Shown here piece after piece: positions 53,515 to 58,100 of a stretch of 64,000 nt of DNA. Location of the stretch: contig CAJFCJ010000008.1 of NCBI GenBank assembly GCA_904063045.1, positions 248,001 through 312,000 of the forward strand. Direction: 5' to 3'. The notes beneath the pieces were generated by a model, which saw nothing but the letters and a program-made list of their open reading frames with translations, did not search any database and was not told the origin of the DNA. This DNA comes from Dimorphilus gyrociliatus. Taxonomy: Eukaryota > Animalia > Annelida. Numbering within the stretch: the stretch's first letter is position 1; every line of letters starts with the position of its first letter. The translations under genes were made by a program, and so were the position numbers.

Positions 53515-53790
53515 TGAGGATTTCTCTCAATTACCCGTTAGACTCTGTATTATTTTTGTACAGATTTCTTTTTATATGGTGTATTTGTTTATATTACTGT
53601 TTATCTCTCTTACGTTTGTACTGACTTTATCAACGAAAGACAAGTAGTAAAAAGATTCTATACTAAGCGGAAGTGAAAGTTCCAAAAAAACGTAGGAGAG
53701 GTCGGTAAACGCTTACCGAATTTCCCCCGGGAGTACGTGTTTTTTTAGACGATCCAGTTCTGTTAAAAAAAATATATAAAAAAAAGCCTG

Positions 53791-53808
53791 GACGCCATCT
53801 GCTGGTGG
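53791..53808 (-). promoter_or_regulatory. CTCF-like site between NSE4 and the TR promoter
   Basis: The minus strand reads CCACCAGCAGATGGCGTC; CCAGCAGATGGCG matches CCASYAGRKGGCR. Confidence 0.6.
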
Positions 53809-54355
53809 TTAAAATTCTGATTATAGTTAGTAAATTGGCGGCTCCTTTCACCATATCTAAGAAAATAAATCAATTAGGAGAAAAAACATATTTTTTCTTC
53901 AGTTAGTACAAAAAAGGAAGAGTTATGTAACAAATTTAAGAATGAAGGCTCCCATTTGTCTCAATAAAAAGGGAAAGTTTACTGATAAATCTCCGTGTTC
54001 AAAAATCTGTCTCTTCCTTTTCCCGAAAGGAAAATAATAAGATTTTAAATAGTATAGGCTTACAAGTGCAAGCGTGATCACTGGTGTTTCTATAGGTAAA
54101 AGCTAAACTTTCCCTGAGTTGAAGTTCTGGTCGAATTTTCCTCTACTTTGTTAAAACACTTTCCACGAAAGGACATAACGCGAAGATACTTTCCCGACAT
54201 CTCTTTATACAAAAGCGGTTTAACCTTTCATACGGTTCGGCAGCATCTACATCTTTCTGCCCAATAGGTGGTTGAATTCGGAGAGTTGGGTTTAACTTTC
54301 GCAGAGAATTCGCATTGGGATAGTGCGGTCTGGTATAGACCCAGTAACCCTTCTT

Positions 54356-54467
54356 ATTGGCTGCAAGCGGTCATCTCGCCATGGCGACGTTGCGTTAGCA
54401 TGACAACCGAGTAGGGTCAGGTCAGGTTAATTACGTAACAGCCCGATGGTCGGAGAATGTTATGTAA
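54356..54467 (+). promoter_or_regulatory. TR proximal promoter module (CCAAT, two X-box-like motifs, DR4, two D-boxes)
   Basis: ATTGG at ~54356; CTCGCCATGGCGAC 54375; GTTAGCATGACAAC 54394; GGGTCA-ggtc-AGGTTA 54414-54429; TTACGTAA 54431; TTATGTAA 54460. Confidence 0.6.
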
Positions 54468-54627
54468 TTTCTCTCTCACCTCCGCCAGTCGCTGCATTTT
54501 GCGATTTGCATTCGATCGGGACACTTTACAACGCTTATAGACGGTGTACTTTTTTTTATAACTACCTCAGTTTTTGTGATTAGACGGGAGAAGTTCACTT
54601 CAGTGTAAAGAGACAATAAACATAAAA

Positions 54628-55084
54628 ATGCATCACTCCCCGGAAAAGTCTTTCGATCAGACGAGATTTTCTTCGTCGTCTAATACTTCTACGCCATCAC
54701 CAGGGAATCCATCTTCCGAAGAAGCATCAAATTCTTTCTTTAGTCCTGGAGCAAATTCTAAAATTGGTATGACTAGTCCGTCTTCATCTAATGGAAAAAT
54801 GAAGAAAAGTAAGTAAATTGAATAGATCTAAAAGGAATAAATTATTAGTATAATTATTACTTTATACTATAAGAATTAAAGTCTCTTCAAGGGGTGCATT
54901 TAAAGGCCTTGTTATCACCCAAAACCATAAAAAAAGAACTAGCTAGCCATAATAAAAAAGAAATTGATGTTAATTTAAACTTTTTTGTTTTTTTAAAAAC
55001 AAAAGAGAAAAAGAAATGAGCAGTTTTTTTTCTATTCTATTTACTTAGTTTTTTTTATAATTTTTTTATAAAGTAGAGAATAGA

Positions 55085-55117
<33 letters not shown>

Positions 55118-58100
55118 AATGTATGGATGTATGTATGGATATATATATATGTGTACATGTCTACATGTTCAATCACATGACTACGTTATGTACTTTGACC
55201 CGAAATTGACCCATAGATATAACTTAACGTGTATCAACAACATGAATTACTTTGTCTAATGGATAAACTATTAATAGAGATACATAAATTCGAAGCATAG
55301 AAACAAAGTACCGTATATAGAATTGTGTACATGTATGTAAACTCATCTTTAGAAATATAAATATATAGGCGTACCACTTTCTTTTAACAAATTGCTAAAG
55401 TAAGAATAATAATACACCTTTTTTTGGTGTGTTAGGTGTTAATTATAGGTTTGTAAATGTCTCCAAATAGGCCGATATCAATATCTGACTAATTGAATGA
55501 AAATTAGGTTTAAACGGATTAATTTTCGTGGAAGCTTCTCTTTTTACGAATATATATTTAAGGTATTTGTTTTGTCATGTATAATACTTGAAATGTGTAA
55601 CTTAATCACGTGACTACAAGACGGTCAGTTGGGCCTATTGTTATTTTTCTAAAGAATCCCGCTTGGGTTTCAGATTTATGTAACAATAGTCACGTGACTA
55701 TTTACACAGTCTGACGACCCGATATTGACCTATTGAGGTAGATTTTACAAATCACCTTTAAATTGCGAATTGATTCTTTCCTTTTTAGAAAAAATAGTTT
55801 CCGTTGAAAAAAAGTAAAAGTAGAAATTCGAAAATTGTATTTATTTTCAGTGCTTGATAATGTATTTATACTAGAAAGTTTGGTTATATTATTTATGTAA
55901 CATGTAAATGCGCTTGAAACGCATGCGCATTGCGTGACGTTGGCATGGCACGCGCAGTCGGACAAGTGCGGTCATTTATTACGCAATCTGTTCTTATGCA
56001 ATCCCCCTATTGTATACGCGTTTCACTGCTAGATGCTTTGTTCCAAGGATGAAGGTTTGTTTATGCCTCCGAGTCTTAAATATATGTAAAACCATTTAAT
56101 AAGTGATTTTTTATTGTATAGTTGAGAAAGTTGTCCGCGCAATGAGTACTGTATTCTTAATTTGTCTCCCCTTTCTTTAAATAACCTACTATTGCTAACA
56201 TAGTAACAAAATCTGTGAGTAAGGAGAATTTTTAGGGCGTAATTGATGACGCAGCCTGGGAAAATGCAAGTTCATGCAAAACTCCACAACATTAGTGGGA
56301 ACAGGTTACGTAACTGACTGAGTGAGTAAGCGGCAATTGCATAAAATTGAGGTCATACGAAGGACACGCATAATCGCCTTTAGCCCCGAACATTTTCCAT
56401 GCGACGCATATGTTAATGATTAACCTTAATTAGTCTGTCATAAAATATACATTTCAACGATAGTCGAATGAAACAAAAATGAGCATCGCAAACTGCAGAT
56501 GTTCCAACATCCAGCTGAGAGTTTTTGACCGTTTGTGCACCTGGCATAGTAAAGACAGTTATAATTAGGCTTGCGTAATCGTCCAGGTGTGTCCGCAATA
56601 CGTACTTAGATGGCACGTTTAAAAAAAATCCCTTTTGCTATTTTTGTAACACAAAGATAAATCACCGCTCCGACTTTCCTTTCTTTACCAAGCTTTTTTA
56701 TAAAGTTTACTTATAACTTTCTCTGAGTGCCTTTTTCTTTTTACCTCTAACAATAGAGTTTAATTTAACGGAATAATGTAAGAATTATTCGCTTGTTAAG
56801 TAATTCGTCATTAACTCCTGTAAACCATATGGCTAGAAGTGAACACAAAGAAAGAGCAAAAGAAGCAAATCGTTAGCCCTTTCTCTCCTTAATAAAAAAA
56901 GGTATTAAAAGTTAAAAGGGAAATATGCAAGCAATTTTTATTAGACCCTTACGTTACGTAAGTATTATGTAATTTATATCGATTAGTGAAATTCCCTTCC
57001 ATAGGAAAAGAAGTTATGTAATTTTATACGTTAAAAATGAAGTTAAAACACGAATATCCTTCTATTGAGAACTTTGCCGACTTTTCCCTAGTTTTTTCAT
57101 AAACAAATTAAAATCAATTAAGTAGATTAATAGTCCGAAAAAAAATAAGTTGAGACGTGCGGTTTCGCTGATAAGGCTGACACCCTTTGTTGCTCTTTGA
57201 GCATAATTGCCCTACTCGTCTTTCCTTTATTGAATAAAGACTTCTTCCAAGTCAAAACAATTAATAAGATAACAATTAAATATCCGCTTTCGTTGTTATT
57301 ATCTTATTAATAAAAAAAAATTCAATAAATATCGCTTTGTTTGTTCGAAAGAGAGAGATTTGTGATTAAAAGTTTGTCTTTATCAATAATTCTTTTGTTT
57401 TTATGGTTGCTTACTTATTTACAGACGCCCCTTATATTCCAAGTTATATGGACTTGACAAATGGTCCGGAACCGTGTGTTGTTTGTGGAGACGCGGCAAC
57501 GGGTTATCATTATCGGTGTATGACATGCGAAGGTTGCAAAGGTTTCTTCAGAAGAACAATACAAAAGAATTTACAATATCACTGCAAATGGAACGGTCAA
57601 TGCTCGATAGATAAAAATACGAGAAATCAGTGCCAGCAATGTAGATTTCAAAAGTGTATTAGGGTTGGAATGGCTACAGACTGTAAGTTATTTAATTATT
57701 TCCTTTAATTAAGATGGTTTTTAATTGAAAAAGTTACCATTTCCTGTGTTTTCCATCACACAGTAGTCTTAAACGAGAAACAAAGAGTCGCTAAACGCAA
57801 ACTGATCGAAGATAATAGGGAAAGAAGGCGGCAAGAACAAGTAAGTTTTTGATGACCGTTTGCTATACAAATAACTATTAGTTTTCTCGTTTCTTAAAAT
57901 AGACAGTACAAAGCACTCGAGTTAAACAGCAGCACGAAAATTGTATTCACGACTGTTTGACAAATGAAGATAAGATCTTGATTGCCGAAATAATGAAGGC
58001 CTATTCACAGACTAATACTTCTCAGAATTATATAATAGTAAGTTAACCAAATAAGATTTAAGGATCTATACCTTATATTTAATGACTCTGAACAATCATT

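Follow-up and report, generated by a model that had tools for sequence, protein, structure and literature searches.

The 64,000 nt stretch of Dimorphilus gyrociliatus DNA analysed here (64 kb, referred to below as the window) carries the gene for the thyroid hormone receptor (TR), annotated as DgyrCDS6842/6843. Its long intron 1 holds three E-boxes and three direct repeats of nuclear receptor (NR) half-sites separated by 5 nt (DR5). An E-box is twice followed at a short, defined distance by a DR5 (modules 1 and 2), and the whole arrangement is kept in a close relative, within islands of non-coding DNA that probably act as enhancers.

DgyrCDS6843 (P0283, 438 amino acids) was found with the Lamellibrachia TR as query, and both this protein and DgyrCDS6842 (P0362) aligned to the window exons with 100% identity in segments confined to exons. 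For mapping, these two public proteins were used as the spliced products. The exon for the DNA-binding domain (DBD) had TR DBDs as its top PDB matches (2nll_B, 2e-35, 124 bits; 3m9e_A), about 29 bits over the next receptor; the exon 1 peptide gave no match when used as a search query. Two donors, in phase and separated by 42 nt, are annotated for exon 1: the proximal donor, GTATGA after the G at 54766, leads to DgyrCDS6843, and the distal donor, GTAAGT after the A at 54808, leads to DgyrCDS6842, which is longer by 14 amino acids, equal to the 42 nt up to 54808. Depending on the isoform, intron 1 begins at 54767 or 54809; it ends at 57424 and carries all of the motifs reported here. A preliminary description of this DNA had placed the motifs in TR intron 1, and protein mapping of the ATG exon (from 54628) and the DBD exon (from 57425) bore this out. 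The median intron of the D. gyrociliatus genome is 66 bp, and the 944 intronic peaks of transposase-accessible chromatin (ATAC) found in this species are located in introns far larger than non-regulatory introns (PMC7854359). Thyroid, TFE3, USF, DR5 and RAR are not mentioned in the supplements of that paper.

Motif content of intron 1

All six motifs were recovered within 1 nt of the positions given in the preliminary description, by reading of the window as well as by pattern searches (Table 1). Each E-box has a core of the MiT/TFE type (CACGTG or CATGTG, with T at -4 and A at +4), namely TCACATGA at 55173 and TCACGTGA at 55606 and 55690. The reverse complement of E-box 1 includes the M-box-like sequence TCATGTGA, the only TCATGTGA of the window, and the 10-mer of E-box 2 is unique in the window. 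The DR5s resemble retinoic acid response elements (RAREs): two RGKTCA half-sites stand in direct orientation on either side of a 5 nt spacer, perfectly in DR5-1 and with one mismatch each in DR5-2 and DR5-3. The spacings typical of vertebrate TR sites, DR4 or DR0, are found in none of the three; their location within TR's own intron 1 is that expected of autoregulatory sites.

The pattern TCACRTGAC has five matches in 64 kb (0.36 expected), and the DR5 pattern, with one mismatch at most, has three in the window (0.22 expected); neither count was reached in any of 100 shuffles. When RGKTCA pairs in direct orientation were scored for spacers of 0-10 nt, with no more than one mismatch per pair, the whole window had a single pair free of mismatches, the one at 55196. 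The TR 5' region (53515-57424; 3.9 kb, from the upstream gene to the DBD exon) contains four DR5s against 0.12 expected, a number reached in 0 of 200 second-order Markov simulations, and no more than one site of each other spacing (about 0.1 expected each); the remaining 60 kb of the window, which is gene-dense, contains one DR5 (1.2 expected). The motif counts in the window are not explained by chance.

Table 1. Exons, motifs and conserved non-coding segments of the TR locus; positions are those of the window, and L009 is the contig of the relative.
Feature	Position	Strand	Remarks
TR coding exon 1 (ATG exon)	54628-54808	+	tblastn: P0283 residues 1-46 = 54628-54765 at 100%
TR intron 1	54809-57424	+	2.6 kb from distal donor; donor GTAAGT at 54809, acceptor ttacag ends at 57424
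Conserved non-coding island 1 (module 1)	55169-55240		88% identity to L009 448-521
E-box 1, TCACATGAC	55173-55181	+	hexamer CACATG 55174-55179; identical in relative at L009 454
DR5-1, TGACCCgaaatTGACCC (minus strand GGGTCAatttcGGGTCA)	55196-55212	-	zero mismatch; begins 16 nt past E-box 1 hexamer
Conserved non-coding block 2 (E-box 3, D-box, E-box 2, DR5-2, TAATT-type motifs)	55478-55776		86-98% identity per 50-nt bin
E-box 3, TCACGTGAC	55606-55614	+	without intact adjoining DR5; identical in relative at L009 924
D-box, TTATGTAA	55676-55683	+	6 nt to E-box 2 (TCACGTGA at 55690); kept in relative at L009 994
E-box 2, GTCACGTGAC	55689-55698	+	hexamer 55691-55696; perfect palindromic 10-mer, CLEAR/USF type; identical in relative at L009 1008
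DR5-2, CGACCCgatatTGACCT (minus strand AGGTCAatatcGGGTCG)	55715-55731	-	one mismatch; begins 18 nt past E-box 2 hexamer
Conserved non-coding block 3 (relatively CpG-rich; CGCATGCGCA, TGACGT, TTACGCAAT, TTATGCAAT)	55854-56052		78-96% identity
Conserved non-coding block 4 (D-box GTTACGTAAC at 56305-56314, DR5-3)	56291-56640		84-96% identity; 56317-56383 identical
DR5-3, AGGTCAtacgaAGGACA	56350-56366	+	one mismatch; identical in relative at L009 1702-1718
TR DBD exon	57425-57682	+	PDB match to TR DBDs; maps to P0283

Nine of the 21 D-boxes (TTAYGTAA) of the window fall within 3.1 kb (53923-57021), a region in which every DR5 has a D-box or an E-box no more than 50 nt away. The DR5 half-sites of modules 1 and 2 also spell GACCCGA. 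Directly 5' of module 1 lies a (TA)n/(TG)n microsatellite (55085-55170) that is unalignable with the relative. Upstream of TR, overlapping half-sites phased 5 nt apart are found in Dimorphilus (54414-54440, GGGTCAGGTCAGGTTA) and in Capitella (L010 4449-4469, AGGTCTGGTCAGGTCAGGTCA); the 13-mer GGTCAGGTCAGGT is common to both clusters, and in Dimorphilus it is directly followed by ATTACGTAAC.

Comparison with a related genome

A genomic contig of the relative (L009; 4,557 nt, run SRR23372229) was obtained via the Logan assemblies, in which a 96%-identical fragment was matched by the DBD-exon open reading frame (ORF). The contig is identical, in the overlaps, to two shorter contigs of two other runs, and it spans the end of exon 1, the entire intron 1 and the ligand-binding-domain exons. 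At four-fold degenerate sites 19 of 36 positions differ (53%; 47% identity). Third codon positions account for 36 of the 38 exon differences, with 29 of 30 in the DBD exon (88% nucleotide identity) and seven of eight in the last 26 codons of exon 1. The alignment breaks down right after the exon 1 donor, and most intron sequence outside the islands has 20-58% identity.

Each of the three E-boxes and each of the three DR5s has its counterpart at the orthologous position of this contig, and from E-box to DR5 it is again 16 nt in module 1 and 18 nt in module 2. DR5-1 reads AGGTCAatttaGGGTCG in the relative (L009 477-493); its spacer is still 5 nt, one half-site has changed from GGGTCA to AGGTCA, which is still consensus, and the other from GGGTCA to GGGTCG, as in module 2. 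The 17-mer of DR5-2 is identical (L009 1033-1049). Five of the six intronic D-boxes are kept, one of them through a C-to-T change from TTACGTAA to TTATGTAA that is still consensus. The preliminary description had named conservation of spacing in relatives as a check on the modules; motifs, order, orientation and spacing were all found to be kept, and since the neutral sites of this relative are near saturation, this is a strong argument for function.

Island 1 extends over about 72 nt with E-box 1 as its 5' edge; in the adjacent 50-column bins identity falls to 22-30% on its 5' flank and, from about 55269, to 24-46% on its 3' flank. Block 2 has its identity maximum, 98%, over 55677-55726, which is module 2. 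Upstream of E-box 3 (55440-55530) there are many homeodomain-type TAATT motifs (CTAATTGA, AAATTAGG, GATTAATT), a content that suggests possible developmental inputs to the same enhancer. The last 250 nt or so of block 4 (56391-56640) have about 94% identity, above that of the DBD exon, and are without codon-position bias. At the 3' end of exon 1 the GT of the proximal donor is GA in the relative (window 54766-54810; L009 38-82), so that the distal donor alone would be usable there.

Coding exons in the conserved blocks were rejected, because blocks 2 and 3 hold no long ORF common to both species and the ORF of block 4 has no third-position bias. In block 2 no stop-free frame exceeds 38 codons in either species; the ORF of block 4, of 67 amino acids on the minus strand (56413-56616), has 5/5/3 differences at codon positions 1/2/3 and looks spurious. 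Rfam returned no family at threshold over the region, and sub-threshold matches to mir-297, mir-466 and mir-1277 on the TA/TG microsatellite (55087-55182) were rejected as low-complexity artefacts. As judged from the alignment, the islands are conserved far above the neutral rate and are non-coding.

Conservation of this kind might have a cause in which the motifs are incidental, such as a non-coding RNA or an enhancer for either neighbour, the upstream Nse4-like gene or the downstream gene for a membrane protein. Blocks 2 and 4, with 300-350 nt at about 95% throughout, are indeed more uniform than a typical binding-site cluster, and they exceed the DBD exon in identity. Such a cause is nevertheless improbable: Rfam gave nothing save the microRNA matches on the microsatellite, island 1 covers no more than 72 nt and has the E-box as its exact boundary, and DR5 enrichment recurs at the TR loci of distant, otherwise unalignable species (see below), as neither an RNA gene nor a neighbour-gene enhancer predicts.

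Block 3 bears on another explanation, in which intron 1 contains an internal promoter and an alternative first exon, with the E-box/DR5 modules as upstream elements of that promoter; its product would be either a non-coding transcript or a TR that is truncated at the N terminus and begins with the Met of SYMDL. The promoter-type motifs of the block are the NRF1-like CGCATGCGCA, TGACGT, TTACGCAAT and TTATGCAAT; conservation is poor in the next segment (56053-56290), after which comes the perfectly conserved, donor-like CTGAGTGAGTAAGC at 56317-56330 (GTGAGTAAGC at about 56321). The annotated TR isoform X2 of Priapulus begins with MDLSKGPEPC. Both annotated Dimorphilus isoforms, the only two, begin at exon 1, and an internal promoter is regarded as unlikely here. 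It would also be compatible with functional motif sites and would change only the start site that they serve.

Origin of the modules

Modules 1 and 2 have in common the E-box, the ACTAY that comes next, most of the DR5 spacer and part of the 3' flank, all in the same order and orientation. They agree at about 60-65% of 72 columns, and more closely when module 1 of the relative is taken. This suggests that the two modules are of common origin, and the E-box at 55606 may be followed by the decayed remains of a third. In the 64-kb window no other copy of the module was found, nor were terminal inverted repeats. Because both copies stand at orthologous positions in the relative, the duplication would predate the species split, and the persistence of both, against the decay of the DNA around island 1, points to selection. 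The modules are real and repeated, as had been described.

A transposon, a miniature inverted-repeat transposable element (MITE) or a recent duplication was rejected as the source, the copies being, within the 64 kb, local only, free of terminal inverted repeats and orthologous in the relative. The same observations bear on the broader idea that the modules are a functionless product of chance, of neutral local duplication or of a transposon remnant. The shared order, orientation and identity suggest a common origin; the copies are, however, 84-96% conserved where the DNA around island 1 is unalignable, and the observed motif counts were never met in shuffles. This idea is already contradicted by the conservation data and is hardly credible.

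Direct repeats at other TR loci

The DNA upstream of each DBD exon was searched with the same half-site definition at the TR loci of Dimorphilus, of Lamellibrachia satsuma (L006; species according to PMC10212961), Capitella teleta (L010), Magallana gigas (L011) and Lingula anatina (L012), and at a locus from an ENA assembly whose DBD is 82-83% identical (L003). The nematode Trichuris suis (L007) was used as the non-lophotrochozoan comparison, and vertebrate TR loci were left out of the sample. DR5s were in excess at all six lophotrochozoan loci, with four in Dimorphilus (0.1 expected), five at L003 (0.4), three in Lamellibrachia (0.4), six in Capitella (0.7), four in Magallana (0.9) and three in Lingula (1.0). 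Pooled over these annelids, oyster and brachiopod (three phyla), 25 DR5s were observed against 3.5 expected. DR2 followed with nine against 3.5, and the remaining spacings had 3-8 sites against about 3.3, among them DR4 with six (3.1 expected) and DR0 with five (3.4 expected). The 3' and remaining DNA of the six loci, used as a control, had five DR5s against 4.2 expected and thus no excess, and in the Trichuris 5' region there was none (about 0.3 expected). The Trichuris TR (L007/L008) is a clear orthologue, encoded by a compact gene of 2 kb, and its DBD has 83% identity to that of Dimorphilus; the flanks of the gene contain no DR5 and no TCAYGTGA E-box.

Upstream, L003 and Lamellibrachia can be aligned over a single piece only, which is 32 nt long and consists of TGACG(T/C)AAC, 2-3 nt and a perfect GGGTCA-N5-GGGTCA (L003 3952-3982; L006 7233-7264), with the same half-sites as DR5-1 of Dimorphilus. 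L003 also contains, twice (2656 and 3902), a unit of a minus-oriented DR5 followed after 33-36 nt by TGACGTAAC. In Capitella (L010 6966-6988) and Lamellibrachia (L006 11828-11848) the sequence TCAC(A/G)TGACCCGAG forms an E-box fused to the TGACCC half-site of a DR6 or DR4; CACGTGACCC resembles the optimal CLOCK:BMAL site.

The pairing of E-box and DR5 does not hold as a rule across TR loci. A partner of the E-box or bZIP type within 60 nt was found for 10 of the 25 DR5s (4.8 expected) and for none of the six in Capitella, and a universal rule of DR5 plus partner was accordingly set aside as weakly supported. The DR5 cluster at TR loci thus looks old, and the fixed E-box + DR5 unit specific to the Dimorphilus lineage.

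The spacing profile also bears on which receptor would use the sites. In one explanation the DR5s are TR response elements only, bound by a TR homodimer or TR/RXR that represses or induces its own gene without retinoid signalling. There is precedent for this: oyster CgTR binds an atypical DR5 of its own promoter in an electrophoretic mobility shift assay (EMSA) and represses that promoter (PMC4692385), and Schistosome TRalpha binds every one of DR0-DR5 (PMC2045677). The half-site cluster upstream of exon 1, at 54414, is moreover ambiguous between DR4 and DR5. Lophotrochozoan TRs have little spacing preference, however (for oyster TR the ranking among DR0-DR5 is DR3 > DR2 > DR5 > DR0 > DR4 > DR1; PMC4692385), whereas the enrichment at TR loci is sharply specific for DR5, with DR2 second and DR3, DR4 and DR0 at 4-6 sites against about 3.3 expected. 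In annelids, RAR/RXR of Platynereis binds DR2 in EMSA, with DR1 and DR5 competing and DR0, DR3 and DR4 doing so marginally (PMC5821490), and the pattern matches this profile. Annelid RAR/RXR therefore fits better than a spacing-promiscuous TR, and control by TR alone is a serious but rather unlikely alternative account of the sites.

Interpretation

With a probability of about 0.6, the motif-bearing part of the long TR intron 1 is read as a group of non-coding cis-regulatory modules under selection, which most likely act as intronic enhancers. The DR5s would be bound by an NR dimer that measures the 5-nt spacer, with RAR/RXR as first choice and TR itself, in autoregulation, as second, and the TCAYGTGA E-boxes would be sites of a dimer, bHLH-ZIP or bHLH-PAS, tolerant of the flanking T and the CATGTG core. 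Modules 1 and 2 would go back to a single unit (E-box, ACTAY, 16-18 nt, YGACCC-N5-TGACCY), of which both copies are older than the split from the relative. On such a unit two protein dimers would sit about two helical turns apart and together set TR transcription.

Candidates for the DR5s are RAR/RXR, TR in autoregulation and NR4A/RXR; heterodimers of RXR with NR4A also use DR5. Among them the DR5s are candidate response elements most likely for RAR/RXR and secondly for TR. Of the earlier proposal of NR dimers at the DR5s, a dimer that prefers 5 nt is the part that gained support, from the DR5-specific enrichment at six loci and the annelid RAR/RXR EMSA (PMC5821490). A monomeric RORE/Rev-erb reading of the half-sites was discarded, since by eye their 5' flanks depart from the A/T-rich extension at two positions. 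MiT/TFE, USF and CLOCK:BMAL, with which the T...A flanks and the conserved CATGTG variant agree, are taken as candidates for the E-boxes; Myc/Max is disfavoured by the flanking T. The genome of D. gyrociliatus is without MAD and MNT (PMC7854359).

Several points weigh against the enhancer interpretation. Modules 2 and 3 lie inside blocks conserved at about 95% throughout, where the DNA around the motifs is conserved as well as the motifs themselves, and conservation therefore does not set them apart. The sub-optimal half-site GGGTCG is the conserved form in three of the four copies of modules 1 and 2 in the two species, so that what is recognised may not be exactly a textbook DR5. In vitro, DR0-DR5 are all bound by lophotrochozoan TRs, which keeps TR a possible binder. 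L003 and Lamellibrachia are related to each other, and the six samples are not fully independent. The partner counts given above, with none of six in Capitella, count here as well, and TR as the target gene of the enhancer is assumed.

A more far-reaching version of the enhancer interpretation would make E-box-N16/18-DR5 a dedicated composite element, on which an NR heterodimer (RAR/RXR or TR/RXR) and a bHLH-ZIP/PAS dimer bind cooperatively and hard-wire crosstalk of retinoid or thyroid receptors with clock or nutrient factors; the DR5 cluster would then descend from an ancestral lophotrochozoan control of TR by RAR/RXR, established before annelids, molluscs and brachiopods diverged. This version is speculative and considered doubtful.

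The control of TR genes outside vertebrates is almost unknown, and the sole tested element found in literature searches is the atypical DR5 of the oyster. The present analysis yields precisely mapped candidate elements under strong selection in an annelid whose compact genome is accessible to experiment, a spacing-specific signature at six lophotrochozoan TR loci, and a testable choice between retinoid-receptor input and TR autoregulation. Should RAR/RXR act on these sites, a coupling of retinoid to thyroid receptor would be old and common to lophotrochozoan phyla. The fixed E-box-to-DR5 distance would offer a clean system for the strictness of motif arrangement in enhancers.

Comparison with known systems

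The locus is built from known motif types. The preliminary description had called the composite undescribed, and this has to be tempered because a TR-bound, atypical DR5 in the oyster TR promoter is already published (PMC4692385). The conserved E-box-N16/18-DR5 unit was not found in the literature searched; together with the DR5 excess at all six lophotrochozoan TR loci it is new, as far as searched.

The nearest precedent is this oyster element, CgDR5 of the Crassostrea gigas TR promoter, which is likewise a 5-nt direct repeat in the own regulatory DNA of a lophotrochozoan TR. It lies about 1 kb from the start and was interpreted as an NR response element that controls TR expression (PMC4692385). 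CgDR5 is single, has two mismatches and stands upstream, with no paired E-box reported, and its binding by TR comes from EMSA. The Dimorphilus DR5s, known from sequence, are three in number and intronic, one of them is perfect, all are kept in the relative, and two belong to a repeated E-box unit.

With the classical DR5 elements of RAR/RXR (RGKTCA-N5-RGKTCA; PMC4283048) the Dimorphilus sites have the half-site consensus, the direct orientation and the 5-nt spacer in common, and the enrichment at TR loci, DR5 and then DR2, agrees with the binding profile of Platynereis RAR/RXR (PMC5821490). Unlike classical DR5 RAREs, two of the three Dimorphilus sites depart from the consensus at one base, GGGTCG being the form that is conserved.

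The E-boxes resemble those of the TCACGTGA type, among which are the CLEAR element (GTCACGTGAC) and the M-box (TCATGTGA) of MiT/TFE factors and the sites of USF and CLOCK:BMAL. As in CLEAR and M-box elements, all three are flanked by T...A; one is a full palindromic 10-mer and one a CATGTG variant, which MiT/TFE factors tolerate. CLEAR elements typically lie near promoters of lysosomal and autophagy genes, whereas the Dimorphilus sites are intronic, in a receptor gene, and beside NR half-sites and D-boxes.

Crosstalk between RAR/RXR and CLOCK:BMAL1 is a protein-protein mechanism. As reviewed for CLOCK(MOP4):BMAL1 at E-boxes (PMC4283048), it links a retinoid receptor to an E-box-binding bHLH-PAS dimer in transcriptional control, as the Dimorphilus locus would. 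In the reviewed case, however, there is no fixed arrangement of sites, whereas at the Dimorphilus locus the two site types stand side by side at a fixed distance.

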